64,000 nucleotides of DNA from Pavona decussata (lineage: Eukaryota): the NCBI GenBank assembly GCA_977016875.1, contig CDRNST010000127.1, forward strand, positions 248,001 to 312,000, in the 5' to 3' direction. The stretch's first letter is position 1. Every line of letters starts with the position of its first letter. Position numbers and translations under genes: made by a program. Below the pieces are notes generated by a model that ran no database searches, was not told where the DNA came from, and saw only the letters and a list, made by a program, of their open reading frames with translations. Positions 8,301 through 62,654 of the stretch are shown piece after piece.

Positions 8301-8474
8301 TCGCACTCTATAATCTATGATTACTGCTAGTTTTAGAGATTATGTTTCTTATTTACCAGTATCCGAGTGCCACACGTTTGTCAATGACATTTGTCACTGG
8401 CACGTGTCAACCACAAGAAATAATGTCGCTATTCTATTCTATTCTATTCTATTCTATTCTATTCTATTCTATTC

Positions 8475-8519
<45 letters not shown>

Positions 8520-14500: not shown

Positions 14501-17500
14501 GTGCAGAAATAATACGAAATACAATATAAAATGCGACTCGGTTGTACTGTATACTCCAGTCATAAACAACACAACAGAAAAACGACACAGCTTGTGACAA
14601 CTTTGCAGATATTTGCAACAGAAATTTTGAGAAAGATGTGGCATTTAGAATGAACAAATAAAACAAAAACTAGTCTCCTACAGAAATCGAACTTATAACC
14701 TTCCGTGCATTGGTAGGATACTCTAACTGCTGAGAGCTGAGGAGAGACTCGTGGGGAACTAAGTCACTAAGGCACGGTGCCTTTCAATACCGAGGTATTT
14801 TTGCGCGGTTTAAGACTAAGCGGGAAAGGCAGATCTTAGCAGGGGCTATTGTAATCCGAAAAGAAAACTGGGGCTATCCACGCATTTTTCAGAGGTAATT
14901 ACCCAACACTAAACTGATGTTAAAAAGCTTCAAATTACATAACAATGTATAACATTTTTACCCAAATTAAAGCTTAATTATCTCTGAAAAATGGGTAGTT
15001 ACGACAATTTTTTCTAGCTTTTAATAACCCTTATTAAGATGTGCTTTTCCCGCGTAGTTATAAACCGCGCAAAAATATCTTTATAGAAACCGTCCCGAAA
15101 AGCCCAGAACGTATTGCGCAATAGCATATGGGGCCACCAACTATTTTCGTATCTTTGTTGTTGTTGTTATTGACTCTTTGTAAGACAAAATACCATAACC
15201 CAGATTTGACCTTCTTTCTATATGTAGTGAAATTATCATTTGGCTGTGAGTTTGAAATTTCATTTCTTTACTATCTTTAATTATTCCACTGTTACGTCAT
15301 ATCACCAAGTTAGGCAAGAGAACGCGCAAAATATAAGACCGTAATACACTGTAGTGTCCCGGTTTAACCGGTTTACAACAGCGCGAATACGGACAGACAC
15401 TTCACTGACTTTCTGTGTTGTTTACGTCATTCCCACGCGCTATAAACTGATGGACAGATAATGCCAGAAAAGAGAAGCCAAAAATAACAAACTTTTTTGT
15501 AGTGGAACAATAAATCTCTTATTAGATGGTTTTACATATAATATGGGTGGACATTTTGCTCATTGCTTTTATATTTCCTCGCCCCTTCGGGGCTCGAAAA
15601 AATACTACGCCACTCGCAAAATATACGCGCGTATTATATGTAAAACCATCGAATAAGATATATTTATTGAGCACTCCTACCTTCAGTTGTAGCTGGGATA
15701 GTAAGCTTTTTCTTCCCCTTTTCTGTAATTGGTCTCGTCGTCTTCAAATGGCTTTTGGGTCTTGACCGGCTCTTAGACCTAAACAGCTGTCGTATGTCCT
15801 CAAGTCCCGGTCGCTCGGGATTTGGCCCGCGGGATGGGTCATTCCCTTGTGAGATGTTCTGTGTCTGGAGTAGGGATTTCTGTCTTTGAGATGTAGATGG
15901 CTGTGTTGTATCTTCAGCCGTAGACACAGGCGGCAAATTCCCGGTTATGTCATCTAGACTGACCACTTCCGGGGGCAAATCGTCTCCATCTTCATTATTT
16001 AATTTATTTAACTTTCTTTCCAAGCCACCTGGTGTTTTTAAGCCAAGGTATGTGCTCTGGTTGTCGTTAAGAAGTGGCATGGAATCCTCTGATTTTTGAG
16101 TCTGCTTTGGAGCAGTGACACGTCTGCTGGGCTTACGCTTTTCTCCTCTAATCTCCGCGGTTACTTCCTTAACAGCGCTGTCCGCCACATTGTCAATAAG
16201 CTGCTGTAAAGCATTCCGCCATTTATGTTTCCTCCCTTTGGTAGAAACATTACCACTTACTGCGGATCCGTTGGTTTTCAATAGCGGCGCAATAACCGGG
16301 TGTTTAGCTTCAATTTCAGCAACAATCTTGTCAATGAACGACTGGTTGACGGTGGGATGTTTCGAAACTAAGTTATTCGCCAAAACAGCGTCATTTTTGT
16401 TGGAGTCGCTGAACACTTTATTAGGCTTTGACGTCTTTCTTTGTGCGTCTTCATGGTAATATGGATCTTTGTGATGGTTCCGAAGATTGTGACGCACATT
16501 ATCTAAGACAGAAATTGAAACAAAAACAAATGTTAATTGATCTTCAGCTATTATATTCGCTGCCGAGGTTAATTTTATTTATATTGCGATACGATATACG
16601 ACTAGATACAGTGCCGGTACTATAATATGAACTACCGTAAAATAAAATAAGAACATACTGGGGGAATGTGAAATAAATGTGATGCTATGTTATGTGGGGA
16701 AATGTTGTGGAACTGGCGACTGTTTTCCCAATTTTGTTTCACGAACAAAACAACAGACTACTTACAAAGAAGGGCATGAGCGGATATCTGAATTGAGTTT
16801 ACAATAAACATGTCTTCGTCTTGACAAACAGCATGTTCATTCTATCTTACTGTACACCCTTAATTCACTTTTTTGAAAGACTCTGTAAAATTACCGTGAC
16901 AGATGTTCAGCTGATCAAATCCCTTAAATTCGTCTCTTCTCAAACCTCGAATTTCACGTTCGATTTATCTCTTTCACCTTGCAAGCAATTAAAATTTTAG
17001 AGCTACAGAAAATAGATTTACCGTACACGTTCACCTGTTTCGGATACCTTGCTTTTCTTTGCCGTTAATTGTTTAACTATTATATCAGACAAAAGATGAC
17101 GGGTACATACCAGTAATGTGGACTTGTGGCTTACGCTGTGCGTCCCCGATACTGCTATTCAGCGGACGTGTATTCCCAACAGAAGAACCCAGGCTTATCG
17201 GTTTCGATATTTTACTGGAACTTGTGGGGATGAACGACCTTTGACGCTGTCTTTCTGCCTCACGAGACGTCACTTCAGATTTCTTCTGAGAATTACTTTG
17301 CTGACGGTACATTTTCTTCATTTTCTTATAGATCTGCTTCATCTCCCTCAAGACCGATTCCTCCTCTTTTTTCTTTCTTCGCTGGTGCTTTTTCTCTATC
17401 CTTGATCGAGTTCTCTTTCGGTCAAACTTTCTTCCTTTCTTCCAATCTCCCGAAGCGAAAGTACGCTGACCTTTCTTTTTCCTGTAACTATTCTTTCCTT

Positions 17501-20500
17501 TAACCGATGCTTGCTTTGTCCCTCTCTTGTATAACTCCTGCACACGGCTGTAAATGGTTTTGATATAATCCATGAGGTTGCGACTTGCAGGTTCCCCAGA
17601 TCCTTCAACTTTATCTGTTACGTATTGCTTCACAACTGTAATTGTCTTGTGACTAGGCTTCCCAAAAGAAATTGTAGGGCTAGGCTTCGAAATAGACATG
17701 GCAGGGGTAGACATTCGAGAAGACATAGGAGGCTTGGGTATACGTTCCTCATTCCGCCTTGAGTAATTAGTGACTGCGTTCTTCCCAGCAGTTGCATTAC
17801 TTCTTTGAGAGTGTTGCTCGATTAGATCCTGCAAACGATTGTAAATTGTGTTGATTCTGTCAAATATTGCGTCTAAGTCAGGTTTTTTGTGGCGAGACTT
17901 TCTGTCCTCTCCACGGAGGGAAGTGATACTTTCATGGTGATAACCAGAGCTAGGATAGATGTCTTCGGATGTTTTCACAACAGCGATTTGTTCACTTTCC
18001 TTAATATCATTTGAACGAGTTGATTCTAGACTATGACCGCTTGGGACCAACTTGTGCCTATGTGTATAGTCATTTTTAATGGTGCTTTGCTCAGGGTGTG
18101 ATTTCTCAAACTTTGTGTCCATTTGAGCAAATTCTGACAGCGTAGGTTCGGATTTAGACGTGGTAAAACGAGGTTCGGGCTCTTTAGTGTGTTTGATTGC
18201 AGTATTTTGGACTATATCTCCTTTACGGCCTGATAATTCATCGAAGGGGCGCTCATGTTGCTGTTCTTTTTGAAACTCATCTTCGTTTACATCTTTGCTC
18301 TCTCTTTGCTTATAAAATTCAAAATGCACCTTAGCTGTGGGAGCTATTTGCTCATGAAAATTCTTCATTTGATCTTTGTTCTCACTGCTCGAGCTAACCC
18401 ATAGCTTTCCTTCTGGCAAGTCTGCGTCAGTTTGGTTTTCAAAGTTAATTTCATCTCCGTGTTTAAACTTCTTTTCCTTTCTCTCCTTCTGCGTTTCCAA
18501 CAGGAAATCCGGCTTTGGGGTAGGAGACATCTGTTCGTGAAAATTTTTCATTTGATCTTTGTTCTCACTGCTCGAGCTAACCCATAGCTTTCCTTCTGGC
18601 AAGTCTGCGTCAATTTGGTTTTCAAAGTCAATTTCATCTGCGTGTTTCAACTTCTTTTTCTTCCTCTCCCTCCGCGTTTCCAACAGGATATCCGGCTTTG
18701 GTGTAGGAGACATCTGTTCGTGAAAATTTTTCATTTGATCTTTGTTCTCACTGCTCGAGCTAACCCATAGTTTTCCTTCTGGCAAGTCTCCGTCAATTTG
18801 GTTTTCAAAGTCAATTTCATCTCCGTGTTTAAACTTCTTTTTCTTCCTCTCCTTCCGAGTTTCCAACAGGAAATCCGGCTTTGGCGTAGGAGACATTTGC
18901 TCGTGAAAGCTTTTCATGTCGTCGACGTTTTTATTTCCCGAAACGCTTTGCTTGTCAAATTGAAATGTATCTTTCCTTTCACTTTCATGAGGGATTGCCA
19001 TATCATCTTTGTTTTTGTTTCCAGAGTTAACCCAAACTGGTTCTTCTGGCTTCTTTCCTGTTTTGTTGGTTAGTTTCAGGTTCATAATTTCACCTAACTC
19101 CAGACTATCTTTGTCTGGTTCAGGCTGTCCATACTTATTTTCGAAACCTTCATCAACTCCAACTTTCTTGTGCTTTCCCGATTCCTTCGGATGCCCAGAT
19201 GCACTACCCGCAGTATAAATAACACGTTCTTCTATAGCATGTTCGTCTGTTGGCCTCCAATGGTTCGAATGGTTCTTCTTTGAAAAGGTATGTTGCTCCC
19301 TCAGTCTTTTCTTTTTTGGTAGCGCCTTTCTCGTTGAGTTTACATGATGTGCCTTTTCATGTATTTTTCCATGGAATCTTTGAATGCTGTGTTCCTGTAT
19401 GTTATGCTCATCTGTTGGAGGGTGCCAAGGGGGCCTGTCTGTATCTACAAGAACCACTCTCTTACTTGCGTTGGAATCTATAGCAGACCCTGCATCATTG
19501 TAACCTAATCTGCTCTTTCTTTCCTTTATTTTATTTGAAATCCTTTTTCTCTTTATTTTCCTCAATGGTGGCTTACGTTTGCTTTTCTGGACGTCCCCAG
19601 CTGCAGAACCCGAAGGCGATTTCTTCTTTGTGCGACCTGGCTTGTCCTTTGTAGCCTTAAGAGAGCGAATTTCTCCTTCAAGATATTTATTCTCTTCTGT
19701 GATGTTAAACAGTTTCTTTATCACGATGTCCATCTTTTCATCCGTTGGGTTAACAGTGTGTTTTTTTGTTGCATTGCCTTTAAGTATTAGTTTGTGTTGT
19801 TTGCTCTTCAAATGCGCATCTGTGGTGCGAAGAACAGTTTTATTAGATGAATAGTTACCGACGCTATGCTTCTGATCTTCCAAAGTGGCGTTTGCCGTCG
19901 ATTTAATAACATTGCGAGCTGTAAGTTTGTTGTCTGGAATCACCACAAATTCTTCGTCTATTGTCTGAGTGATGTTCTTCAGTTCAGCGAAGTCTTTCTT
20001 GTAAGAATTCCGGTTTGTCTTGTTCGCTCGAACCTCTTTATAATGAACCACATTCACTGGTTGTTTATCGACAGAATAAAAACCAGAAAGAGTTGAATTG
20101 AAGTCAGACGGCTTTATCACTGGACTGGAATTGTTCTTAATAAAATAAACAACCTTGGGGTCAAACCTTGATTTCCTCGCTGGGACGATCTCACAAGCAT
20201 AGCCGCTTGAGCACATCACTGTGTAGCAGTTATTAAGAAACATAAAAATTAAGTCACAACCAAGTTGTTGGCAGCAAAAGTCAACGCATTGCTTGGTAGA
20301 GTTTACTTTTCCACGCGACGTGAAATTTCCAGCGTGGTATCCCATTCTGAGGGTGACTTCCTTATACTCATCGGAGTGTGCACAAGTTTTATTTTTTGTC
20401 TTAGTGGATTTCATTTTAGTTTGTGTTTCATCTTCGATCGCCTCCAGCACCGCGTTAATTGGTGGCAATGTTGTTGCAGGCTTGGTGGTCGGTTTTGAAT

Positions 20501-23500
20501 GATGGCGGTAAACATGAATGACTGTCGGGTTGAAATTTGGCAGCATCGAGGGCGTTGAACCACAGAGGTATTCGTCAAAACATTTAACAAGGAAACAGCG
20601 ATTGAAAGCATAAAATGCTACATCGCAATCGTTGGCCTTGCAGCATAACTCGGTGCAGATAGACGATCCGTTAACCTTTCCAGCGTCAGTGAATTTTCCT
20701 GCGTGAAGACCTCCTCTGAGAGTCACGTTGTGTTCAGTTACAGAAGAAATACAGCCTGAATGGATTTTCTGTGGTGAAATGGGCGTTTCAGCCATTTGCA
20801 ACAAACTGCTATCTCTATTTGGTGCGGGTCTTTTCATAGTTATTGTGTGACTTGGTATCGTAGACTCATGTGATGGACTAACAAATGACGAGAATAATAG
20901 GCTAGTTTTGTTATTAGCAACTTCTGGTGCTAACAGTTCCGGTTGCTGTGGTGACAGCTTGGGGGGAGGTGCCATGGGTTTCATAGTGGGGGAAGGTTTA
21001 ATGTTCGGTTTCGCTGCAGTTTCTTTCACTTTATCTTCGCCCAAATTTCGTGTAACACGAGAAATCATCGGATTAAAGTTAGTGGCCAAAGCGGGTGTGC
21101 TATCGCACATGCGTGGATTAGAACTCGAGCACGTGACCAGGAAACAGTGGTGGAGTACCATAAAGGCTAGATCGCATATTGGACTTGAACAACAATGTTG
21201 AGAGCAACTCTTCATATCGTTCACTTTACCAACCTCATGGAACAGTCCTGAAGAGAGTCCTCCCCGCAAAGTTTGGTTGTACTCGACTTGGTCTGTTTTG
21301 CAGCTTGAATCTTCCTGAACAGGCGCTTGGGTTGGCAATAAAGGAACAGTGGATTTTGTGCTGAGGAGTTTATTGTGATGACGCAATGGGCTTTTTACGT
21401 GGTGCGGTTTGGGTTTTCTTGTGGCAAGTGGTCCCGAACTTGTTGCATGAGTCATCCTTTGTCTACGCGTTGGCTTTTCATTTCTTTTTAGACTCTCAGA
21501 ATTTACAGATTCAGCATTATGTGACAAAGTTAATCTGCTTTTATCTCCATCATCATTAAAAAGACGCTCCACTTTAGAAGCAAAACTATTTTTACTGTTT
21601 GTGGTATTCTGCGACTTGTGAGTGCCTGTGTTTTTCTTTCTTGGCGCAGTTGGCTGATTCTGCTGATTTACTGCAGTTGTCGGTGTAGGCGTGGAGGATT
21701 TTCCGTCCAATTTAGGGGCTAATGTGTGTGCTTCAGTCGACGTATTCTTCATGCCAGTTGCTTCTGGCCTAACAAGGGCCTTCTTAGGCTTCATGAGGCG
21801 GAACAGCTGCTCTAAGTCGCTATGTGACAATTTCCTATTCCTTTTCTTATCCAATTTACTTTTGAAGCGTTGTATTTTAGCGGCTTTAGATGATGCAGTT
21901 CTCGTGTGCTTTAGGTCAGTTACTTTTATGTTGCCATGATGTTTCTTTATTGGCTTTCTTGCTTTCTTTTTCTTTAGCTCTGGTGCTACCGTCACGTGCT
22001 TGATCTTGTGGTGCGTTGCTTGGTTACCAGGCTTATTTTTACCTTTTTTGCTTTTCATTTTGTAATGTCTTTTGTTATTATGGTGTGATTGCGTCGCATT
22101 GTTCTTGCGATCTAACAATTTCTTGGTTTTTATACTATGTCTACTACTGTTATCAAAAGATTTTACTAGCGCGGGGAGGGTCGAAGACGGTGTAATATGA
22201 TCAGCTTTAACTACGCTTTGAGGATGTTCAACTGTTTCTTGCTCGTCCATAAATGACATAAGTTGCGAAACGTTGGTCCGTCGCACATGCGCAACACGTG
22301 GCCTGAACATACTATTTCTCGCTTGAACTGTCTGACATCCTTTTTTGGTATAGCACGTGACAAGGTAGCACCGCTCCTTAAGCATGAAAGCCACATCACA
22401 CCTGTCAGAGTCACAGCACTTGCGGATGCACTCGCCCATGTTTTCAACCCTCCCCTGGTCCCGGAAATAACCCGATCGGATACCGTTGCGTAGCGTAACA
22501 TTGTAAGAGATCGGGCTGTCGAGACAAGAGAAGGGTTGATTGATTGAGTGTCGAGGGAGGTCTTCTAAAGTCCTTGTTAGCCCAGATGAAAATCCTGACA
22601 ATACTCCCCCCTTTGTTGTTGATTTGTTATGTTCAGTATGAGCTGATGAGTTTGTGTTTAGACTGAACATTGGCGACGGCATTAAGCTCGATTTGTGGAT
22701 GGATGATGCCAATATTGATGGTGTAGCATAGTGGTGGTGGTGTGAAAACGAGGCACCGACGGTTTGATTTCTAATTTGTTGAAGTTTAAGAATCTTGCTT
22801 TGATTTAGAGAAAGTACAGCAGAACTCCAGACTCCTAACTTCAAGATGCTACTGTTCAGCATCACTTGTCTATTTGCTGTCGCTGGAGAGGGACTTAACA
22901 AGTCCGCGAGCTGCTCCGAGTCAAATCTGCCAATTACATCAGCGACGGTAGATTTATTCTCTGTTTGCGAGGTGTTACTCTCATCTCCTTCTCCCATAGC
23001 TGGAAGCGCCGCATCGAGTAGGGAGATCGTCTTTGTTGATTTATGGGTAAACAAACGCGTGGAATTCACACTAGAAATCTTGTTAACATAAACAATTTTT
23101 GATCTGTATTTTGAGGTCTTAGCAGGTACACTCTCACAGAGCTGTTTGTTGTGACATCTGACAGTAAAACAGTTTTCCAACAGCATCAGCGCAAGGTCGC
23201 AATGATTTTCTCCACAACACAAGTCGATACACTGTTGTATATTCACGACTTTTCCATTGTCCTTGAAATGACCCGCGTTTAACCCACCACGGAGCGTCAC
23301 GTTATGTTTTTGTTCGCTGCTCGTACAATTATGACGCGATTCTAATGGAAGTGTAAACACTTTGGAAAACAGCCACTGCGATGGCGAAGGTTTTATCTCC
23401 AATGAGTTTGGCAGGCTTACCGTCCTGGTAGTAACAATCGATGGTAAATAACTGTCCGTAGCTTGAAGAAAACTCAATTTTTTTCCTGTTATTGAAGTAT

Positions 23501-26500
23501 TAAGGCGTGTCCTCTCCGCGCTTGACCCAGAAGGCGAAGGTTTCGCACTGTTTTCCAAAATATTAGTAAAATTATCTTGATCTCGTCGCACACGAGAAAT
23601 GAAAGCAATTCTAGGTGTGAATGTCAAGTTTTTTGCTGGAACAGGATCGCACAAATGCTCGTTATAACACGCGATTGTATAACATCTTGTTAACAACATA
23701 AACGCCAAACTACAGAATTGCCAACGGCAACAGTGCTCAATACATTTTCGCATATTTTGCACGGTCCCTTGGTCTTTAAAAACCCCCGTGTTGATTCCTC
23801 CTCGCATGGTTGCATTGTAATAAACAACTGTACTTTGGCATATTTCATCTTCTGAAAAAGCTCCACTAGTTTCTAATTCTTTCCCAAGGAAGGTGACATT
23901 TCTGGTCCTTTTAGCCCATTCTAAGCTCGATAGGGGCGAATTTCCTATCAGTGAAGATGGCGTAATTGTCTTATCAAGTAGATGACGCGTGCTTTCTGGA
24001 CGTGTTGACATACCTATTGTTTGAATCAATCCAACTAATTCCTGTTTGTTTTCTTTGACTGGCTCAATCGTAGATTTGATTAACGCCCCAGGAACAGGTA
24101 CAGCGGGTGGTACAGTTGGTGACCTTAAATTCATGCGAGGACCAATGAAATGCCTAGTTAATGTCAAGTGTTTGTTATCTGTTATCGTCTCCTGTATAAA
24201 ACTCAATTGGCTGAATAGAGCCAAAGTCCTACTTGAGAGGTGTCCAACAGTTGTCGCTAAACTCTCAAAATCGCTTTCAATTTTGAATTTTGGCGATGAC
24301 GGTTGAACCAACCTGGCCAGAAGATCTCGTACGACAGCAGTCTCATCTCTAGAGACATGCACCAGCTCAGTGAAGTAGTCGGCGTTTCGCGCAGGAATAC
24401 TTTCACAAAGGCGGGAACTAAAGCACGTGACTAGAAAGCATCTCTTCATTATCATAAAGGCCACGTCACATTTGATTACACTGCAACAATGATCAGCACA
24501 CTGCTCAATGTTTGAGACTAAACCGGCATCCAGGAATGAGCCAGCGTTCACTCCTCCGCGTAAAGTTACCTCTTTTTCCAAGTTACCATGACGACAGTTG
24601 TCATGGAGACGAGCCATGCTGGTTTTGCTTTCCGTTATGAGTTCAGTTGATGCAGAAAATAAGGGAGTACTACCTTGAGTTTTCGCAATTGTGTCGATAT
24701 GAGTGACAGATATAATAGGCGAACTTAAATTTCTTCCAACATAGGCCAGCTGTGGTTGAAAGATTAAACTACGTGCTGGAATACTCTTACATGAAGTTTT
24801 ATTGTAACAAATCACTGAAAAACAGCGGTTCAAAAGCATAAAGGCGACACTGCAGTTGGCCCTGCCGCAACAAAGTTCAATGCATCTTTCCATACTTTTA
24901 ACAGTTCCTTCATCTTTGAAATGTCCACTATTGATTCCCCCACGAAGAGTTACATTTTGCCGAGTAATGGAAGCCTTACAAAGGAACTTGTCTTTGACAT
25001 TTTCAGGTTTTGGTGTCTTTTTAGTTGCACTGTTGTCTCCTGGATCTCTAGGAAAGAGGCCCATTGTAAACATCCCGGATCTTGTACTTGGAAACAATTT
25101 GTTCTGTTTGAAGCTGGAGTCGAAAGGCCTTGTTACTGTCTGGCTTTTTCCTTCGGTTGGGAGTGGCACCTTTTTCTGCATGTATATAACTCTGGGTCTG
25201 AATGTGAGAGTCTTGGCAGGAACGCTATCACAAAGTGTTCTGCTCTTACAAGTGACCAGAAAACATCGATTCAAAAGCAAAAATGCCGCATCACATGTTT
25301 TGGAGAGACAACATTGACTGATACATTCAGCATCATTACTCACTGTTCCAAAATCTCTTAAAACACCAGCGTGTACCCCGCCTCTCAATGTTGAATTAAC
25401 GTGTACTGGAGAATGTTTGCATAAAGCCGCCTTGTGTATTCCAGTGATGTTTAAAGATAGTTCACGCAAGGGTTGCATCGCTAGTGACATGTCCAATCCT
25501 TTTGATGCAATCAATTTGGACGAAAATTTGGTTGCCGTTACAAATGCAGACGTTAGCGTTGTGACGGATGGCTTGACCGTTTCTCCAGGAATGATGGTTA
25601 TTCGAAGAGGAGTGTTCAGAACACTTAGGAAAAGAGAACTTGACTCAAAGCTTCTTTCAGTAGCGGAACTAAGATTATGGAAAACAGATGATGGTGCTCT
25701 GACACCATCATCATGAGGATTTCTGTTCTTTTGAGTGAGGATGTCTTTGATGCTTTTAAGCAGCTGTGCAAAATATCCAAACATACCACTTTTCTCGCCG
25801 TTAGCAGCCATTTCTGCTGAGCTTGTTTGCAGTTCTTTTGCTGTATATTGGCGACTTAATTTAATGGTTTGACTACTATCTCTTGTAACTGGTGCACTTT
25901 CTTTCCACATCGAGTGCGAATCGAAATGTTTGACGGATGCCATCGATGGGACCCGGGTTCTGGACAACGGAGGTGTCGAAATCTTGCTGTGTATTGTACT
26001 CGAAAGCTTAACTACATCTGACGGGGTTGGGTTATTTACACGCATGGTTTCAGGACGTGGAAGAGGTGATGGATGTCCATCAAGGCCCGCATATGGTAAC
26101 AAAGCTTGAAACTGTATGTTGTGAGACGTTCTGGATGGCGACGCTCGCAGACCATCGTTACGGATGGAGAGGCTTTGATGTCTTCGGGACCTGCCAAGTG
26201 TAGTTGTTGTTGTAGGGCTCAAGTATTTAGGTGTGAGCTGTGGCATGCGTTGATTGTCAGCGCTGGCCAACAACGTAAATGAATCTGTAGTCTGGAGGTT
26301 CCCTGTTGTTGCTGCTTTGCCAGATTTCACTTTATCATTCAAAACTGCCCTTCTTGCACCCACAGATACTTTGGCGAGCGAAGAATCAGTAGAGGCGCTT
26401 GAAATCCTTTTCGAATTGCCAATCGAGGGTAGGCGTGGTGACATCTCGTGAAGAGGTCTGATTTGCTCTAGTAACGCTCCTGATATCGGTGTTGAGTCTG

Positions 26501-29500
26501 AAATAGTATCATGTGATAAATACTGAGGCATACGTTTTAATGGCTGAAGTTCTTTGATTTCTTCTAAGAAACCACCAGCGAAAGGCTTAAATTCGGGTAT
26601 TTCCACACGCTTGTGTTTCTCGCTAGCCATGGATAGATGACCCACTACAATTTCTTTACTAGTAAGGTCCTTTTTAGTGACTGACGGTGGATAAGCCGTT
26701 GACGCTGTAGTGTAATGCAGAGTGCTCTTCGGCGTCCTAAAGATGCTTGTTCCAGACGAACTTATTGCGTCAACATTCGTGGATGTTTCCTTGCGCAAAA
26801 GGATTCGTCTGATATCACTGAGAAGTTCGTTTACTTTCATGTAATTGGCTGTTGATCTCGATACATTCGATATAAGCTTTTGGATGGAATGATTAAGCGT
26901 CTGTATGAGAGGTATTTTAGGAAAGTTGTCACTCAGTTCTTTCATAATCCTGTTCACGTGAAGATTTTCCTCGGTATTAAGAGAATCATTTTGTTTGCGT
27001 GAAATGTTCTGTTTCCCTGAGTCTACGAGTTTTCTACTTGTTGCAATTTCTTGTGTCGTCATTTCCATATTTGACAGAGAGCCTTGAAGGGACTGAAGAA
27101 GATCCTCTGCTTTCCTTAAGGAAGACGATGTTTGGTTCTGTTTCCACTGAAGCAAGGAGAGTTCCTGTTCAATAGAGTTCAACTTACTATCTTTGTGAGT
27201 TCCATTTGAAGACACTGGAAACTGCAGCAATGACTCAAAATTCAGAATCGCATTGCTTTTCGTAAATGACACTGAGGATTCCGTCTTTCTCTGTGAACAA
27301 GGAGGTGACACTGGCGTTACCTGACTGCTCAAAAGTGAGGGACTCGCCATCAGCGAAGGCGTGCTTTTTTCATTTGATCTTGTGTAATATCGGGGAGGAC
27401 TGTTCATAATTTTGCTAAATGTGAGCATCTCTAACATATACGAAACCGAATTCGTATTTTTCGATGACGGAAGCTGCTTTTGAATACTTTTTGTCTTCGT
27501 TGGTTGAGTAATAATTCGTGTTGGAGTAACTATAATGTTATTGGCATCATTAAAAGAGGATGGTGATGCACGCAAACTAAAAAGCGAATGAGCTGTTCTC
27601 GTTGGCAATGCATTGCTGGAGGATGTTAGGAAATGCGTTGGTAATGGTAATGGTTCACTTGGAAATCCAGCCAAAGGTGAAGTGGATGTAGTTTTCAATC
27701 CTTGAACTGTAGATACTGCTAGTAAGACTCTCGTGGTCCTCGACATGGTAAGTGTGTAGTGTGCCACCAGTACCTCGGGGGTGGCATTTCCAGAAAATGA
27801 AATTTTATGGACACTTTCGTCTAGGGTGGAAGTTATGATATTTATACTCTTCCCAGAAGTTATACTAAAGGTGGGAAAGAACATACGGTCCACTGAATCA
27901 CTCTCGCTCATGCCTCCAGAGCTGTTTGCTAAAGGCCAAGTTGAGGGGGATCCATTGTATAAGACCTTGGCTACCGCTACATTCTTGCTACCTGGATTGT
28001 CTCTAACCTTGCTTAGTTGCACAGTTGTATTTTCGCCAGAAGAATAATGAAGAGATGTACTTAACAAGCTTCTAAGGGGAGGCGCAGAGCTTGGGTTTAG
28101 TGCTTTTCTTGTGAGAGAATTATAATTTTTTAAGTATGAACCAACTGTTATGTTTAGTGCAGTCCAGGTGGATTCGTCAAAAACTGATGATTTCAGTGGA
28201 ATGTCTCCCCTTTTATTCTCCTTAAAGGGATCGCCTCCTTGTACTTTTATGTGAGTTGTTTTCTCCAGAGTTAACACAGACTCTGTTAATACAAGGTTCT
28301 TTGAAATTGCATGGCTGCTTTCTTTATTTGACAAATTCGCAGACGATAATTTCTTCATATCCTCAGTTTGAAGATAAGGCATTGCTGTTGGGCGTAGAAG
28401 AGGAGTTGACGTAATTTTTGATATGGCAGAGTGAGATACTGTCATATTTGATGCTTTTAAGCTCGACGAAGGTTTTACTTTGATAGGCGTATTAAGAGGT
28501 AATGGTACGTTTCCGTCCGAGTACTTATTGGCCAAATTATATGCTCTTGTCATAGAATTCAAACTGAGAGGCGAATGGGTTGAAGAAGCACCATCTGATT
28601 CTATTTGGATTGTGTTGGTGGTTTGATGCTCACGCCTTTCTTTTTCCACTACAGTACTGTAACCAGAAGTTGGAGGGCTGACTGAAATTCTCGGCGACGA
28701 ACCATTTAATGACTCTGCAAAGCTAATCATAGACTTGACCAGTAATGAGTTCATTGGAGCTGTAGCTGCCGTCTCCGCTATGTCACTGAGCTGACGAGGG
28801 ATGATTGATGAAGTTTTGGAATCAATCACTACCATTGCGAGGTTTGAGTGAGTTGTAGGTGTTTTGTTTTTGAGTCCGTCTTCTACGTTAGTGATCTCAG
28901 ATGGATTCCAAGTCTTGAGAGTTCTATTGGATGTGTTTAAATGTGACGTTGCAAGTGAGGACGAAACATTTGATAAACCCTGTGTCTGGATGATGAATGT
29001 TGAACCATTTATATTGCTAAGCGATTTTGACTCCCTTTCCATAGTAGGGATTAGATATGATGGTTCCAAGGTTTTCTTAGGAGTTACACTTCCAAGTACT
29101 GGTGTAGGTTGCTTCAGAGGGGGGAAGACATTAGAGGATTCCAATACAGGGTTCGAGGTTGTTACAACATAACTAGTACCAGCGTTTGATGTCATTTCTT
29201 GACTAGTACGAAGGACACTTGATGATTTCAGTTTATGTGACGCTTCTTTATTATTCGTATTGCTTAATGACGGATTAAGCCCAGGCCGAACAGGGAAGAT
29301 GTAAGATGATTCCGACAATGTATTTGTTTTATCTTTAACAATCACGCCGTGGACAGATGGTGAAATTTCATGCTGAATAGAGAAAGTGTTTGTTGATTCC
29401 AGCGTAGGAGTTGTGCTTGATGAAGCATTTACAATACCAGATGAAGTTAAATGGAGGTTCAGCGAGACTAAGTGAAGAGATTTCTGCGATACCTCAGTGT

Positions 29501-32500
29501 GGGTTCTAGTAATGTTTCCATTATTTCCTTTGCCCTTAGCGCGTTCCAACTGAGATCTGCGAATTGCTGCTCCATCCTCATCAGATGTAACATTGAGGTT
29601 ATCATTATTTTGATACTTGTCGAGTAGCTCCTTTGGAATCATCTTCAGGAAATATTCGACTTCAACCTTGTTCCTCGCTAAATAAACTACAGTAGGTTTA
29701 TAGAACTCTGACTTCGCTGCAACAGTTTGGCAATCAAGTTCATTAGAGCATGACACCAGATGACATCTGGATCCCAACATGAAGACTGCGTTACATACAG
29801 TCGTTTCGCAACATAACACAACGCATTCATCAATGCCGGTTACTATACCGACTGACTTGAAATCACCAGCGTGCTTTCCAAGCTTAAACCGGACGTCACG
29901 CAGTACGGGGCTGCGAATGCACGACCCTTGTTTGACGACTACATCTGTCATCGGCAAATGTTTCTCATCTTTGGGTTTGTTGTTCCCTGTTCTATTAGCG
30001 TTTATCTTTGATGTTTCAGTGTGACTGATGAGCTGTTTTATTAGTTCTGTTTCGTCCTTACTGCGCGCCACATAGGCAACCTTCATGCTTTCCCTCACTT
30101 CCCTACCTTTAGCAGGAATAGCCTCACAGCCTCTCTTGTTAAAACACGCTACAATATAACAGGTCTCATTTACCAAGAATGCCACGTTACATTCCGGTGT
30201 TTTGCAGCACATTTCCACGCACTCCTCCACGCCTTCAACTTTTCCCTCATTCTTTACATCTCCAGCCTCAAGCCCACCACGCAATGTCGAGTTGTTAAAA
30301 ACGAAGGTGTGAGTGCAGGCATAAGATCGTTTTCTGTTCCGATTTTTCCTTTCCTTCAGTAAGCTGTAATCACTCATGAAGGAATAGTCCTCAGATGAGA
30401 AGATGGATGAGCTATTTTTATTTTTATCACCCCCGAAACTCGCCATCGAAAACATAGACGAGCCCACTTGATTTCTGAAAGTGTCCCAAGGCTTAACATA
30501 ACTGAGAGATTGCCTCGTCACCTCACTTTTTCTGCTGGAAGAAAAAGGCTTGCTTGAGATACGTTTGCCAGGTAATAACTGCAACATTGGTGTCACAGAG
30601 ATTGCGTGCCATACGTTTTTTCCCATATTTGCTGTATCCACTTGACTTCTTACAGTAGTAGAGGAAATTCGGCTAGCCCCGCTGCTTAAGCTACTAATCA
30701 CATTTGACATGGATGACGCTTTAGAAGAAACTGTCCTAGACAGTGAGAAACTTGTAATAAGGCCTCCATGCTGCGATGACACGCGTGATGGTATATCGTG
30801 CTTCTTGACGTTCAAATTGTAGACGATATTTTTACTGTTTGTATTAAAATTCGTTCGTGTGGGGTGGATGTAATGAGACCCAGTATAGTCAAGTGCCATG
30901 ACATGTGAGTTACTTTCGCTGGTACTGTTCTTCACATTCAAAATCGTGGATTGGTTTTGACCTTTGATAGCATTTCGGACATCTCTCATGAATGTTGAGT
31001 GACTGACATGCTCTTTGGATTCGGTGAGCAACCGTATTTGTGCCTTCTTAAAAGGCGAGAGGAGATGGCCCAGATTTTTACGGACGCCTACAAATTTGTT
31101 TATCATAAAAGCTTTCTTTGAACCCGTAAACTTGCAGCCTCTCGTCTTGAAACAAATTAGATTATAGCAGTACTGATCAATAAACATTGCAGCTCCGCAC
31201 CCGTGATAATCACAGCAAGCCTCGGTGCATTTTTTCATGTCTTTGATGTCGGGCAATCGAAGGAATTTTCCACTCTTCCATCCTCCAGTTATATTCACGT
31301 TCGTCTGTTCATCGGTGATATCACAGTGCCCTCCTAAGATGCTCTTTGTAAACTGGGTCATTGAATCAGAGCCTATATCACCAGAAGTGGGGCTTATGCT
31401 TCTATTTTGAGCTCGAGCTACAAATGCGATAGCCGTCGTAAAGTCCACCTGCTTTGCTTTCATTGTTTTGCAATCTCTCTTATTGGCACATGCAACTGAG
31501 TAACAATTCTCGCCAATCATGAAAGCTGCATTGCAGGAGCTGCTGCAACATTCCTTTATACAAGCGCTCACGTTCTTTACTTCACTACGCAATGTGAAGT
31601 TCCCGGCTTTTAAACCTCTCTGAAATGTATATCCACGTTGGATACCACCTGATTGAATACAACTTATATGACCTGTAGCCGGGAAAGGGACGTTTTCAAA
31701 AAAGCTGTTGTTCTTTAACGCCATAAACGTTTTTAATTTCGTCGTTCTTGCATTTAATGGAAGACAGCCGCTCTTGTCTTCAGCGCACTTAACGGAATAA
31801 CAATTGTTTTCAACCATGAAAGCAACATCACAGTTTTGTGAATTACAGCATTTATCGACACAAGACGAAAATTCATTTACAATTCCGTGGTCTGTAAAGT
31901 TGCCCGCATTTATTCCTCCCTTAAGGGTAACGCCTTTGAGAACACCACTCACAAGAGGGCATGTCTGTTGTGCTTTGATCTTAGCTATCCCCTTTGGTTC
32001 TGGCTGGGAATGTTTCTTGGAAAGAGTCTTGCGAAAGTATACTATCGATGTGTTAACTTTCTGTGACTTTGATGGGATTGCGTGACAGGCTTTGTCGCTG
32101 ACACAATCAATTGTAAAACAGTTATTGAGTATCATAAACGCTGCATCGCAAACCTTTTTGGAGCAGCAAATGTTGGAGCAGGCTTGAATACTGTCCACCG
32201 TGCCGTAATCTGTGTAGTTGCCGGCGCTCATTCCAGCAAGAAATGTCATATTCTTTAGAACTGTTATGTTCTTTGCGCAGTTTTTAATCGTGAAGTTGCT
32301 GTCGTATACCAGTGAAGAAGCGGTTGGATGACTAGTGGTACTGTACGGCAACCGAAGCATTCTGTCTTTCAGGTACACCACACGGGTATTGATCACAGTT
32401 GTATCAACAGGCAGGACTTCACAGGTTTTCTGACTGTAACACTGTATGGAGTAACACGTGTTTCCAACCATAAACGCTACGTGACAAGAAAGAAGATCAT

Positions 32501-35500
32501 AACATAGTTCCACACACGTTTCCATAGTTTCAACTTTGCCGCGTTCAGTAAAAACACCAGCTTCTAGTCCACCGCGAAACGTAACATAGGTGAATTCTTT
32601 ACTACGCTCAGCATGACTGGAAAGTGTCTTGTTTCGCACGGGTTCATGATGGAAAGAATGCCTGGTCTCAACAACACTTAAATGACTATTCAGTTTACTG
32701 GCAGTGAAAAATGGAATCACTCTGGAATTAGCTGAAGGCAACACAGTCCGTAACGTACTGAGTTGGACAAACCCAGTTTCAATTTTCCGGGTGGTGGCTG
32801 CCGATAATCTTCCATGGCTTTGCAGTGTCATCATTTCTCTTGACAGATGAGATGAAGTGGGCGAGATTAAGTGTGGTCTTGTTGCCGTGGTTTTGCTTAC
32901 TTCTAAGAAAGCCGAGACTTTTGTAGATGTTGCGCTAATGGCCTGAAAATGCGTGCTCACGTTTCCATTCCTTGAAACTATTGTCGTAAAAGAGTTCCCC
33001 TTTACGTAATTTCGTTTAGTTTGAATCATAGCCTCTAGTTTAGTAAATCTCTTTAGCAAAAGTTCTATGAGCTTGTTGTGTTTATTGTCAACCCTAGTTA
33101 ACTTCTCTGGTCGCTCTATTTTAGACCTTTCAATGACAGTGCTGTTCGGGTCTCTCCTCTTTAACTGCAATGCTGCGAGAACTGATGATATTCTCTTCAG
33201 CTTTGACGAAATGCCTTCAAGTTTCAAATCGACGTGTTTGGATATTTCACTCGAGCCATCACCTCTGTCCATTGTTTCATTGAAAGGTAACGACAAGTTA
33301 GCTGAAGTCCTGAGATGATTATTTGTTTCACGCAACACAAGTCTCTGTAGATGACCTAACATGCTTTCAAGTCGAGCAACGGAATGCACCAACCCTGTTT
33401 CATTCTTCAAAAGCTCTCCAATGTGTCGAAGGGCAAGATGAAAGACAGGGCTGGAGACAATTCCACTTGCAAGAGCGCGAACGACCTTTTGTTTTTCCTT
33501 TACTTTACCCAGAGTTTCCTCAAGAGTCCTTTGAAGAGGTTTTGAAGTTATATCCACAGAATCAGTTATGAATGTACCAGCAGTCGAATGCTGGAATGCA
33601 TCAAGACCACCACGGACGGAGGAAGCGCTTGTGATTTCTTTCTTGAAAGCTAGTGACTTTACCGGGGTTCCGTACGATGCATTTACGGACACATTAACTG
33701 CGTCAGAGGAATGCAATGAGTCTGAAGGATCCAAAGTTACTGCGCTAAGGCTAACAGCTATACTCTGTGTCTTTGCAATACTGAGTTGTCTCCCGGATGG
33801 AGCGCTTGTGTTTCCTGACCCAGTGGATGAAATTGGTATTAACTCTGTTTGCCAGATACGAGATACTGAAGTACCTTGCTTTGAGGATTCTGTTAAATTG
33901 TTCTTAACTTTCTGTGATGCTGCCATAGAATCTGGAACATTCGCTGACGGCGTTAAATCGACTCTGTGTTGTTGTGCAAGTTCGACTAGAGTAGCATTTC
34001 CTGCTAGTTTAATAATGAAGTCTTTGCTTTCTATACTATTAAGTGGTTTCGACGTTAAGATGACGCTGCTTACGGATAATTGTAGTTGTTTAGACACTGT
34101 CAATATTACAGGAGTCCTAGTACCATGGCCATGCGAGATATACAGAGATGAGGTTTTTCGAGGTTGGTATGACTTTGTAATCATTATGGTCTGGTTAACC
34201 AGTAGATTGGGCGTTGGTTCTGTTTTCCATTTTCGGGAAGATAACAGTGAATCAGCTGTTGTATGATGTGAAGTACTCGTTGAGGCAGGTTCTACTCTCG
34301 TGGCTTTTAAAGCTAAAGATAAATATTGATGAGTGGAAGTTGGTTCCAAACTCGAGCTGTTTCGATTTAAAGGTGTCAAAGAAAGTATTGTTGCCCTTTC
34401 TACCATGGAAGTTGCACTAACCTGGGGTGAGGATGACGTCGGAAAGGAACTTAAAACTGGCAGCCGTGGTGTATCAGTTGTGGGTGTTTTAAGTAATTCG
34501 TTCTGTTTAAACGTAGGCGCTTGCTTTGTAGCAGGCGAGGGCTCTTCTTTATCAATTGATCTTACGGTGTCTTTCACGTTCATCACAAGAAACGATCTTT
34601 TACTTTCATGAACTGAAATGTTTATCTTTGATGCCGTAAAAGGAAAGTCAAAGCTCTGGATTGGTATATTACTATGTGTTGGTGTTGGGTTGGGCAGAGA
34701 TTTGGCACCAACCAGTTGGACATTATTGTACTCCTGCTCAGCGTCAGGTTTGTTTGTGTGGACAAATGGATTCGTTGAATGTGGCACGCTTGTAGAAACG
34801 CCTGATAAACTGACTAGCTCGACAATCCTTGATGTTACCATGGGAATTTCATCTCGCTCCTGTTGTATCTTGGAAGGCATATAGGAAGGTTTCAAGGTGG
34901 CATGCACTGAACCAGAGAGATCAACAGCGACAGTTGAAAAATGGGTTTGGGTGGGTGAGAAATTTATTAGACTAGCAAGCTTTTCTAGTCTAGGTGTCAT
35001 GGTGGGGCTTTCCTGGAATCTCACTTGTTTGTCAGAAGGACTACTCAGCTGAGATTTCTGTTCGGAGAATGGATGCACCACATCAGAGTTTGTGACGTGA
35101 ATAAGTCGTTGTACGCCTTTAAGAGAGACAAAGCTCAGGGTAGTAAGCCCGTCTAGATTTGTTGTCTTTACAACGCCCCCATCCAATTCCACTTGTGTTC
35201 TAAATGGATCACTTAACAGTGTATTCTGGCCAGAAGAAGTAGCGGCTGTTAAATGCATGAAAATTGGGCTTTCGGTATCATGGTAGAAAGTTGAAAAATG
35301 TATCTCTTTTAGGGAGATGTCCGAGACGCTATGAAGCCCTTGAGGTCTTGGTGTCAAGGAAGGGATCTGATCTCCTTCTATTTGAATGCTTGATGGGCTA
35401 TTCGACTGTGCATTCTGTTTAGTAAACGGTATGATGGTCGAGTTGGTGTAATTCATCACAGGGGTGACGCTAGCATCCACAAAGGAAAGCGATGATTGTT

Positions 35501-38500
35501 TATCACTGGAGGTAATGTCAGACGAGCTTGCAATTTCGCCAACTGCTGATGTGATCGAATATAATTCTTCTCGTTCCTCCTGCATCTGCTCGTTCGCACT
35601 CAGTTCAGAGGAGGTTACGATGGTTGGATGTCCCACTCTTAGATACGCTGTAGTGGCAAACGCACTGGAAGAAGACATCACCTTTGATGAGACGTCCCTC
35701 GAACTAGCGAGTGTGTCTTGACTTGATGTGACAACTGAGACACTACTTTCCTCTTTTATCAAGGAAGGCCTGCCAGACTCTACATTCTCACTACGGTTAT
35801 CAGTATGGCCAAAGGAGGCGGATGAATGTGTCTTTTTGGGAAGGGCATCTGACAAGCTAAAGAACCCCTCTAACTTTGGCGTGATGACAGGGATCTGATC
35901 TCGTTGCCATTGTCTTTTGCTCTGCTGTGCATTTTGTTCAGAGGAGGCAGAAACGGTTGCAGGCTTCATAGCAGTGCTGTATACAGCATCCAATGAAGTT
36001 GGAAAATCTGTCACGCTTCTAGCAATGTCTGATATTTTAGGAAGTCCGTCTAGTCTTGGTGTAACGGTGGGTATCTGACCAGGTTCCATAATCGGTTCAG
36101 GATTTATGTTGTCGGTATCTTTAGCGTTCAAATGCACCGTTGGTGACGATGCTTCTATGGTAACAGAAGACGTCCTCCACTGATAAGCATTCTTGGCTTG
36201 AGAAGGCACATCCTCGCTAGTTTCAAGTATCACGTTTGTGAGCCCACGGTCACTAAGCTTTTCGATCGTCGAGATGCCCATCGGAGGAGTTTCACTTAAA
36301 GTTTCGGTTGTTTGCATGTCAGTATACCTAACCAAGCCGCTGTTAGTCAAATCGCTTGTGGCTTTCACCGGTATGCCACTGTTCGGGGTATCTCTTGTTG
36401 ACAACGACAGGCTTGAAGCAAAGTCCTCCAAAACAGATGCTGTGGCCTCTGATATTCGTTTCTCTTCGCTCTCCACTACTGCAAGCAACAGTAACAACAA
36501 CAACGACTTTATACACTTAAACACACATTTACAGGACACACTTCAAATCCCGCAGGTGGCTTTTAAGCTATTCGAGGTGGGCTCAATTCAAGGAAGAAAA
36601 CGATCTTGCAACAAAAGAATGAAAAACAAAAAAACAAAACAAAAAAAAACAGACAGATAATTCTAGAAGCTATCTAGCGTTTGATTGTCCTGATCTTGTT
36701 GTGTAGTGTAGACGATAACGGCGCGGTAAAAACCCGAACGAAAACAAATACCGTTACCTAAACTTAGACCTCAAAGCTCTTGATTCAATCTGGGAGACTC
36801 TACTGACTTCGAGAAGCAATTTGTGGTGTGGCTTATAGGCAGCATAGGCAAATAGCAAATAGTGAAAGGGTCTGCGTTTTTCTTTTCCTGCTTCTTCACG
36901 TGCACTCGTTGGTGTTTCCAAAGGGGATAACAGCGATAGAGCTGGACATTGGCGTAGACTAAGACAATGTACATGTTATTTGGAGTATAAGCTTACCTGA
37001 CTTGGCATTTAAGCTTGAAGACATCTCTGTGAATGTCGCTGGTTCGGTTGACACTTTTTTGACTGAGCTTCCTGGCAACATATCTGTTCCATATGGACCG
37101 GGATCCGGTTTAAGTGTCTTTGAGGAAACAACAGAAGCAACGACGAATTCCAGACTGGAAGAGGCCATCACAGAACCCTCACTGACGGTTCGTGAAATTC
37201 TTTTCGAGCTATCGGTGCTTGTGACTCCAGGTACCAAGAGTGATGATATAATTTGAAGTTTTTCTGTCGTTAAATTTAAACTAGGGGTATGCCTTATGGC
37301 CTCAATTCTCGACTCAAGCAATATTATTTCTTTCAACTTTGGGGTTTCAAGAGATACACTAGAGCCTAATATGATCGGCAAAGACGAATCATGTGCAGCG
37401 ACTGGGCCTGCTTCAATGGTATATGACTGTACTCGCATCGTGTTCGTTAAGGGAGTTGACAAAGTTATTTTCGAAGATCCCAAAGTTTGTGATTGTAATC
37501 TCAAGCTGCCAGGCAAGTCACCAGGCTCTTTTTCAGGTATCTTTGAGGCAGTGGAAGAGAGCAAGTTGTTTGATGTAACAGGGCTTGCTTGAACTCTTGC
37601 TGTCGACAGCTTCTCTAATTCCTGCAACTGCAACTGAAAGCTGGTAAGACTGCTACCTTCAGTTAAAATGCTGTCAGTTTGTGACGAAGGGGTACTGAAG
37701 CCTTCCAAATGTTTGGAACTTTCTTGCTGCATCTCAAAGCTTGATATCACACTTGTGTCAACTGCCAAGGTCTTGGTCTCTGAGATTAGTATCGCCATTT
37801 TCGTTTTATTCGAAACTCGTGACAGGAGCTCCGTTTTCTTAACAGTCGCGTTACTTCCCGGGTGAATAAGCGTTGTCGTTCTTCCAAGGCCAGATCCAGA
37901 ATCATTCAAAGTCAACAATGGCTGCGACATCAAAACGTATTGGGGAGTTGTCTCGTTTGCAAAGATGTCTGTTTCCGTTTCGTTAGACACTAGTACAGTA
38001 TCATTGGAAGTCATTTCCTCGTCAGCTTTACTGTTATTTGCTATGTCAACAAATCCACTGCCGTTTGAATGAATGTTTCGCACCTTGACTGAGCTCAATG
38101 GGAAGAAGCTACCCATAGTGAAAGTGACATTTTCTGTGTCGCTGTTAATGGAAGACCGGTGCTTTCTTGACACAAAGTCCGTTTTGCTCCTGTATGACTT
38201 GATCTCTGCTAAAACAAACAATTGAATGACACAAGGTATTAATGTGTTTTGACTTCAACGAAAGGCTTGGAAAATTACTTCTTCGTGGCGGTGTCTGTTT
38301 TTCAGCATTTTCAAAACAAAATGTGCGACTTTCTGGAAGTGGATATGATCTTCCTGAAGACTAGATGTATGGGTCTCCTGTAACCGTATTTTTCTTTAAC
38401 CTTCCAAAAAGTACTTTTACATCGTATCTTCGGCAGCTTAAAACTCCGGTAAGATAAGAACATATCTGGTGAATGAGCCTCTTAACTTGGTTTGAGTACG

Positions 38501-62205: not shown

Positions 62206-62654
62206 TTGGTTTGAAAAAACTGGAGTCTCCCTGCCAATGGCAGAGACCTGCTTAAAACTGATGTGTCCAACCCTAGTTTTCTTAGAGCTGGTTGGATGTC
62301 TGTTGGGACTATCTGTAATGACGTCTCCAGAATTTCTTTTGCAATCTGGGGCTTGTCTTTTTGATTCAGGTGCTCTCTTTTTGACCCTGAATTTAACTGA
62401 CTTGCCTTTTGGATATCCTTTGTAGTTAGAGCTCTTTCCTCGGAAGGAGACAGACTTGCCCCCACCTCTGCTCTGAAATGAGGGCCCATGACGAAAGGGC
62501 TGAGAGCTTCTGGAATCTTGCCTAGAATACCTTTTGCCTCAGTAGACCTGAGGGGACGGCCAGGAAGTGGAACCAGTAATATGGTGTGAAATCTCCTTTG
62601 TAGATTTCCTAATCTTTGTTGCTGTACGGAGAGCCTTGTAGAACTTTTTCCCAA
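60207..62654 (-). CDS. DIRS1 pol: reverse transcriptase + RNase H + Dam-methyltransferase-like (MT) domain
   Basis: PVINLKRLN, IDLKDAY, LPFGL, YLDD; TDAS/HINALEL/DN (RNase H); IDLFA...DAF...FPPF (MT). True start uncertain. Confidence 0.93.
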   Translation of the reverse strand: MGKSSTRLSVQQQRLGNLQRRFHTILLVPLPGRPLRSTEAKGILGKIPEALSPFVMGPHFRAEVGASLSPSEERALTTKDIQKASQLNSGSKREHLNQKDKPQIAKEILETSLQIVPTDIQPALRKLGLDTSVLSRSLPLAGRLQFFQTNWRLLTQDQYILQIVTGVVIPFQQTPLQTNMPPHISHNQSEEENIEQEIAAMSQKGAIQVVSPMKGEFISPIFLVPKKDGGSRPVINLKRLNSHIVYQHFKMEGLHLLKHIIQEKDFMIKIDLKDAYFCVPMSQQHQPFLRFIWGGTRYQFTCLPFGLAPAPLYFTKLLKPVVALLRRFGLRMIVYLDDIIVFNQTRGGILRDRDSTLWLLQNLGFVINWKKSVLDPSHCMECLGFVINSMEMNLSLPKEKMNQLIQSCRDLIREKTASVRTLANVIGKLTSSMQAVLPAPLHYRPLQMLQVKGLLAGKSYETMVSLNQNCQNDLQWWVDQISTWNGPSIITPAPDLVITTDASLQGWGAVCQGVRTRGLWSQQESNTLHINALELKAALFAVRAFTAKERQLHVHLRMDNRTAVAYVLKMGGTRSSVLVGIAQELWGYALTKQITLTAEYLPGKYNHEADWESRHFWDSSSWKLNPSIFQALDQLWGPLEIDLFADRLNAQLMNYVSWFPDPFAQATDAFQIPWSKLKGYSFPPFSMICRCLAKIRKDLATIVMITPTWHTQAWYPVLLEMYCRQPVLLLPLENILMSPSQQPHPLVLQGSLQLAAWMVSGKTSLQKEFQSKLPSYSAPTPGARELRALTIAPGHSGVAGVIREKLIHFAPLWPL

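Follow-up and report, generated by a model that had tools for sequence, protein, structure and literature searches.

The window analyzed here, a 64,000-nucleotide (nt) stretch of contig CDRNST010000127.1 from the stony coral Pavona decussata, carries on its minus strand a gene encoding a string of MANSC modules, within which a single internal coding exon spans 19,368 nt (Table 1). The first-pass annotation had described a stop-free frame of this length at 17111 to 36478, between a pyrimidine tract/CAG acceptor and a GTATGT donor, and exactly such a frame was found, on the minus strand. It is contained in an open reading frame (ORF) at 17085 to 36539, which encodes 6,484 amino acids and is by far the longest ORF of the window. 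The exon length is a multiple of three (3 x 6,456), with phase 1 at both entry and exit, and the sequence contains no undetermined bases (N count, 0). Its first base, 36478, directly follows ttgttgttactgttgcttgcAG, a pyrimidine tract/CAG acceptor extending to 36479, and its last bases, ATTACTG, end at 17111 and are followed by GTATGTACC, which provides a G/GTATGT donor (the slash marks the exon border). All 6,455 codons of the coding frame are free of stops, whereas the other five frames contain between 212 and 504 stops, with a longest open run of 243 codons; calculated from base composition, the probability of a frame without stops is approximately 1e-171. Stops are reached at most 8 codons past one exon border and at most 20 codons past the other.

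The exon had also been called mostly nonrepetitive at the DNA level, which agrees with a self-comparison in which the only self-match was a tandem repeat of 183 bp present in 3.1 copies (18337 to 18917). The copy number of this repeat varies between the window and its closest relatives, as seen from alignment gaps of 122 and 64 amino acids, and it is the only demonstrable recent duplication within the exon. Over its 5' 3.8 kb, the exon is single copy in the 602-Mb assembly.

A Pfam search of the exon identified 16 KIAA0319_N/MANEC (MANSC) domains, distributed as five, five, and six over its thirds. Scores for PF23597 (KIAA0319_N) ranged from 127 to 159 bits per third (cutoff, 27), and the 16 stretches matching PF07502 (MANEC) scored 36 to 73 bits (cutoff, 25.5). 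When the 16 modules were aligned, nearly all displayed a seven-cysteine pattern, C..CC....C........C....C......C, over approximately 80 residues. A hidden Markov model (HMM) derived from the gene itself identified 33 minus-strand modules in the window, with 16 in the giant exon, seven in the exon at 38801 to 44284 (exon 7), and the remainder at one or two per open frame, matching the module counts of the first-pass annotation. The 16 modules have a median pairwise amino acid identity of 35% and make up 20% of the giant exon, the other 80% (approximately 5,200 residues) being spacer. The main spacers comprise approximately 1,290 residues ahead of the first module, 1,420 in the middle of the exon, and 1,000 at its end. 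Spacer composition is 16% S, 10% T, and 6% P (Ser+Thr+Pro, approximately 32%), with Lys, Glu, and Arg enriched toward the 3' end. Assignment to the mucin-type exons, built of tandem repeats rich in Pro, Thr, and Ser, was considered and rejected, DNA repetition being limited to the one charged 183-bp x 3 array.

Table 1. Features of the 2030T orthologue in the P. decussata window (all on the minus strand)
Feature	Position(s)	Description
Giant internal coding exon	17111..36478	19,368 nt, phase 1 to phase 1, 6,455 full codons; MANSC modules 12-27 of 33 plus long spacers
Tandem repeat, 183 bp (61 aa)	18337..18917	3.1 copies, 93% identity; charged sequence
Upstream intron	36479..36996	518 nt; donor CAG/GTAAGC at 36996, pyrimidine tract/CAG acceptor at 36479
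Downstream intron	16503..17110	608 nt; donor GTATGT at 17110, acceptor ...tgtcttAG at 16503
Preceding exon	36997..38208	1,212 nt, phase 1-1; MANSC modules, 0
Second large exon	38801..44284	5,484 nt, phase 1-1; 7 MANSC modules
Downstream exons	16502-15652, 13140-12490, 11648-11004, 10132-9719	Same gene
Downstream exons, continued	9148-8954, 8179-6944, 6636-6190, 5844-4975	Same gene
MANSC modules 12-18	32600-32364, 32264-32028, 31946-31710, 31646-31413, 31313-31077, 30305-30063, 29909-29673	Pfam and HMM
MANSC modules 19-23	25409-25173, 24968-24732, 24584-24348, 23828-23592, 23315-23079	Pfam and HMM
MANSC modules 24-27	22514-22278, 21290-21048, 20741-20505, 20372-20136	Pfam and HMM
miR-2030 precursor hairpin	13846..13925	5p arm at 13891-13912 (22 nt, no mismatch); hosted by the intron that separates exon 15652-16502 from exon 12490-13140
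Putative miR-2030 target site	22491..22512	1 mismatch; inside the giant exon; codes for (P)ISYNVTL where module 24 begins
Second putative miR-2030-complementary site	44211..44232	3 mismatches; close to the beginning of the 7-module exon; encodes VSYNVTL

A word search of a protein collection returned proteins from stony corals and sea anemones. Among them, a total of 32 orthologous uninterrupted frames were identified, all plain ORF calls, ranging from 5,630 to 7,666 amino acids (the longest corresponding to an exon of approximately 23 kb), in which MANSC modules were the only domains. Their identity to the window fell into steps of 95, 89, 79, 56, 52, approximately 45, and 29%. Montipora (P0016) and Pocillopora (P0032) could be recognized among them through matches to named models, and in a tree two frames (P0034 and P0035) branched with Nematostella, outside the stony corals. 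The starts of the orthologous frames are translated pyrimidine tracts, and nearly all of the frames stop 4 to 40 residues beyond a conserved ...PQVH.T followed directly by G(M/K)YP, a read-through of G/GTATGT or G/GTAAGT. The same open frame, with a GTATGT or GTAAGT donor at the same codon, is present in about 30 other coral or hexacoral assemblies. The arrangement was confirmed on DNA in one metagenome locus (L002), where 6,530 codons are open and encode 16 modules, with a donor at the same codon and a downstream intron of 345 nt; this intron is 85% identical to that of a further locus, L005. As the frame is open in all of these genomes, any constitutive internal intron would need to be stop-free and in frame in each of them.

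Both borders of the giant exon are supported, because independent annotations bridge them. Models from Oculina patagonica and Montipora foliosa give a single colinear alignment to the last approximately 3,000 residues of the exon, cross the downstream intron from 17112 to 16497, and continue through exons 16497-15652, 13140-12490, and 11648-11004 onward. On the other side, Desmophyllum and Stylophora models run from the 7-module exon through the 1,212-nt exon (36997 to 38208) and enter the giant exon at its first residues. The downstream exons (4975 to 16502) encode Laminin_G_3, EGF, and MANSC modules 28 to 33, and full-length models terminate with a single transmembrane helix followed by a brief conserved tail (...KKSLFSW.E), which argues that the product is a type-I membrane protein. 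The total length of the protein is estimated at approximately 11,000 residues; the exons were searched one by one and not as a joined spliced protein. Exons 36997-38208 and 38801-44284 are, like the giant exon, multiples of three with phase 1 at both ends, and skipping any of the three would be frame neutral. The first approximately 170 nt of the downstream intron align at approximately 69% with distant corals; this segment (16943 to 17110) is alignable even in corals whose spacer protein barely aligns and could contain splicing-control elements.

The age of the array was examined by means of a phylogeny of the 33 modules, which had been proposed together with the original description, to which the 21 modules of the Nematostella protein LOC5501396 (N01 to N21) were added. 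Modules 12 to 27 paired one-to-one and in order with N01 to N15, and modules 28 to 33 paired with N16 to N21. Of the 16 giant-exon modules, 13 paired with a Nematostella module, most with support values of at least 95/80. This order-preserving pairing shows that the array predates the split between Actiniaria and Scleractinia, dated to approximately 500 million years (Myr) ago (PMC7935066), so that the 16-module layout is roughly 500 Myr old. The exon had been suggested to have grown by intraexonic duplication or by wholesale intron loss. Recent growth by duplication of modules is ruled out by the age of the array, and any intron loss is likewise not recent. Contig C131 of the same genome (G000) carries a paralogue (305000 to 403000) with at least 25 modules in a row on one strand. 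This paralogue shares the long module row with the giant exon but has the opposite architecture, as each module occupies its own exon of approximately 300 nt with AG/GT borders. The pitch of this paralogue equals the 100- to 112-residue spacing of modules 12 to 16, which is compatible with ancient intron loss and makes it plausible; ancient duplication within the exon would fit the present data equally. A further paralogous multi-MANSC gene, also with one module per exon of approximately 300 nt, was observed at C303:107000-134000 (the C131 locus designated L006 corresponds to 379500 to 389499).

Purifying selection on the exon had been proposed, and three measures bear it out. The ratio of nonsynonymous to synonymous substitution rates (dN/dS), obtained by comparing L002 with two other corals, was 0.146 and 0.154 for the modules and 0.440 and 0.449 for the spacers, the latter over 2,137 and 2,246 codons. 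In the spacers, the proportion of nonsynonymous differences (pN) was below that of synonymous differences (pS; Fisher's exact test, P = 2.7e-24). Windows of 150 codons mostly gave dN/dS values of 0.14 to 0.5, and the few near 1 owe this to an unusually low pS and not to a high pN. Internal indels relative to the three closest relatives of the window (n = 9, 15, and 35) were all in frame. Codon-position periodicity was strong in spacers (chi-square of 79 to 116 per 1,000 codons) and modules (76), compared with 1 to 14 in introns. The spacers are fast evolving yet translated and constrained. Several 150-codon windows around the miR-2030 site described below (L002 residues approximately 3815 to 4434 versus L005) had a pS of 0.05 to 0.10, compared with approximately 0.2 elsewhere, which may reflect RNA-level constraint.

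The window was searched with the 22-nt miR-2030 sequence given in PMC3962355, and three matches were found where none was expected by chance. One is the 5p arm of a precursor hairpin (fold of -39.2 kcal/mol; z = -6.7) located in an intron of the gene, and in distant corals (L002 to L004) the hairpin is 88 to 91% identical and lies in the same intron. The second lies within the giant exon; its peptide is invariant from corals to Nematostella, and the 22-nt site is the same, base for base, in four distant metagenomic coral loci that also carry the exact microRNA (miRNA) in the same intron. The third lies near the start of the 7-module exon. The VSYNVTL island that it encodes is conserved in most corals and falls outside any module, and it may be that the RNA site rather than the protein imposes this conservation. 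An Rfam scan of the window returned no match to an miRNA family, only tRNA.

Through these features, the gene can be tied to a locus already known to miRNA biologists, by way of PMC3975064, PMC7935066, PMC8141815, and PMC3962355. In Nematostella, an intron of 2030T hosts the miR-2030 hairpin (PMC3975064, PMC7935066), and the transcript is sliced at two miR-2030 sites, as established by degradome analysis and RNA ligase-mediated rapid amplification of cDNA ends (PMC3975064). Praher et al. named the gene 2030T and counted it among the conserved targets (PMC7935066). According to a 2026 preprint, such targeting was seen among corals in Stylophora only (10.64898/2026.05.09.724056). Colinear tblastn and blastp chains, the module pairing, the same-strand intronic miR-2030 precursor, and the two near-complementary sites all identify the gene, on comparative grounds, as the stony-coral orthologue of cnidarian 2030T (Nematostella NVE19315/LOC5501396). 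The coral and Nematostella proteins also share the same transmembrane segment and cytoplasmic tail; they differ in that the NCBI model of 6,953 amino acids for Nematostella starts at the equivalent of module 12, without the 11 upstream modules. With miR-2030 arising from an intron two exons downstream and a site inside the giant exon, the exon would be part of the published host-and-target feed-forward loop. By analogy with Nematostella, 22491 to 22512 and 44211 to 44232 are putative slicing sites in this coral.

We consider it highly probable that the stretch from 17111 to 36478 is a genuine giant coding exon of the coral 2030T orthologue and a real internal exon, which is presumably included constitutively in the mRNA of this coral. 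The encoded protein is a type-I transmembrane molecule with an ectodomain built from 33 serial MANSC modules together with Laminin-G, EGF, and Ig domains. To this ectodomain the giant exon contributes the middle part, consisting of 16 anciently diverged modules set within Ser/Thr-rich and Lys/Glu-rich spacers. Such a protein may function as a giant glycosylated surface or matrix-contact molecule. Pairing of splice sites across short introns is an established means of overcoming the size limit that internal exons usually face. Both introns next to the giant exon are short and canonical (518 and 608 nt, with approximately 345 nt for the downstream intron in a distant coral), and their splice sites could be paired across the introns (intron definition), so that the usual limit would be lifted.

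Several points weigh against this interpretation or narrow its basis. The 5' approximately 1,000 residues are the least conserved part of the exon (8 to 20% identity to distant corals); they are supported by the open frame, codon periodicity, and in-frame indels only, and the frame of one relative (P0004) begins only at residue 728. The dN/dS values cover the 3' 45% of the exon and were measured in other corals, and splicing by intron definition is read from the architecture. RNA-level evidence consists of the expression and slicing of the Nematostella orthologue and is indirect for this coral. A word search with the final 1,200 residues for transcript-derived proteins spliced across the donor returned genomic read-through fragments only, and matches to exon 7 were likewise genomic, none being transcript derived. 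Some annotated gene models also conflict with a single exon: the Pocillopora damicornis model pdam_00022242 joins 32720-30909, 30419-29493, and 25430-24954, omitting spacers, and Oculina isoform X2 and the Montipora models begin inside the exon, at residues approximately 3527 and 3405.

These conflicting models, together with two GGTATGT donor-like sites and seven acceptor-like tracts inside the exon and a length that, as in its two upstream neighbors, is a multiple of three with phase 1 at both ends, could mean that the frame, although coding, does not form a constitutive single exon, with whole-exon skipping, exitrons, or internal starts producing short and giant isoforms, as known for the giant ankyrin exons. 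We regard this as unlikely. In the Pocillopora genomic frame (P0032), no stop interrupts the stretches omitted by pdam_00022242 (e.g., 1,315 codons in one piece); thus, these stretches are not ordinary introns and are best read as predictor artifacts. The internal model starts vary by species, as those of 5'-truncated models would, and the spacers that would be skipped have a dN/dS of 0.44 and solely in-frame indels. Strong donor-like hexamers are if anything depleted in the exon (3 versus 8.6 ± 2.8 expected), although this mild depletion, reached in 1.6% of shuffles, is too weak to serve as evidence. A particular form of this idea, which we hold to be improbable, is that the giant exon is a phase 1-1 cassette in some transcripts only and that the miR-2030 loop would dose a giant isoform apart from a short one; if true, it would amount to isoform-specific autoregulation around an exon of up to approximately 23 kb in some corals, among the largest conserved animal coding exons. 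Prokaryote-style ORF callers report a stand-alone protein of 6,470 amino acids, as an independent intronless gene or a fused annotation artifact would give, but the frame is entered through a pyrimidine tract/AG and left through GTATGT, with stops within 8 and 20 codons, four annotated coral proteins, like the Nematostella protein, extend colinearly into neighboring exons, and the exon lacks its own signal peptide and terminal stop, with the transmembrane segment and tail encoded downstream; this origin is therefore very improbable. Least credible of all is a decaying, unexpressed relic or a frame open by chance, which the comparative sequence data already refute: besides the negligible probability of chance openness given above, the frame has been kept open in approximately 30 assemblies, dN/dS is below 1, and in Nematostella the orthologue is expressed and undergoes slicing at two miR-2030 sites (PMC3975064), a candidate counterpart of which, in the giant exon, is nucleotide identical among corals.

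As an internal coding exon of the 2030T orthologue, the 19,368-nt segment belongs to a kind that is rare but not unprecedented. The exons of TTN (approximately 17 kb) and MUC16 (approximately 21 kb) are of the same order, as the first-pass annotation had pointed out, and AHNAK likewise has a giant coding exon. The giant exons of ANK2 and ANK3 measure 7.8 kb (PMC12798937), and long internal exons tend toward disordered regions (bioRxiv 10.1101/2022.04.03.486857). What these genes have in common with the coral gene is one internal or central exon, on the order of 10 to 20 kb, that codes for a long and largely extended or disordered part of a very large protein with a structural or surface role; the proteins themselves are unrelated. 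Unlike mucin exons, the coral exon is not a DNA-level tandem-repeat array, and its Ser+Thr+Pro content is only approximately 32%. The giant ankyrin exons are alternative, whereas nothing here indicates alternative use of the coral exon. With KIAA0319, KIAA0319L (AAVR), LRP11, and HAI-1, the coral protein shares the MANSC/MANEC seven-cysteine module (PF07502, PF23597), located in each case in the extracellular part of a protein that crosses the membrane once. However, vertebrate proteins of the KIAA0319 type have a single N-terminal MANSC module, compared with 33 in the coral protein, which has Laminin_G_3, EGF, and Ig domains instead of PKD; orthology is not claimed.

The miRNA papers term 2030T an unknown or uncharacterized protein and give neither its domain content nor its exon sizes (PMC3975064, PMC7935066). 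Searches of the literature on MANSC in corals, on giant or largest exons, and for locus tags returned no description of the coral giant exon, and the protein and exon levels are new relative to the literature searched. The gene 2030T, a conserved miR-2030 target that also hosts this miRNA (itself among the only two reported as common to Cnidaria), thereby gains a domain-level identity as a giant transmembrane protein of 33 MANSC modules. An internal exon of approximately 19 to 23 kb that appears to have been retained open for approximately 500 Myr beside ordinary GT-AG introns offers a natural test case for long-exon recognition. It also serves as a warning for annotation, as gene predictors cut false introns into this frame, the Pocillopora model being one example.

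The introns of the gene had been described as rich in transposons. The introns flanking the giant exon are merely 518 and 608 nt long, and the statement was examined in one intron, where a repeat family is present at 45849 to 46068, an interspersed element of approximately 220 bp with at least 40 scored copies at 88 to 94% identity and 937 candidates genome-wide. Approximately 250 nt from it, at 45524 to 45598 (minus strand), lies an intronic tRNA-Ser(TGA)-like sequence (Rfam, 51.9 bits). An 815-amino-acid ORF at 60207 to 62654 (minus strand), upstream of all MANSC exons, encodes a reverse transcriptase and a Dam-like N6-adenine methyltransferase domain, which we take to be the domain pair of a DIRS-type retrotransposon.

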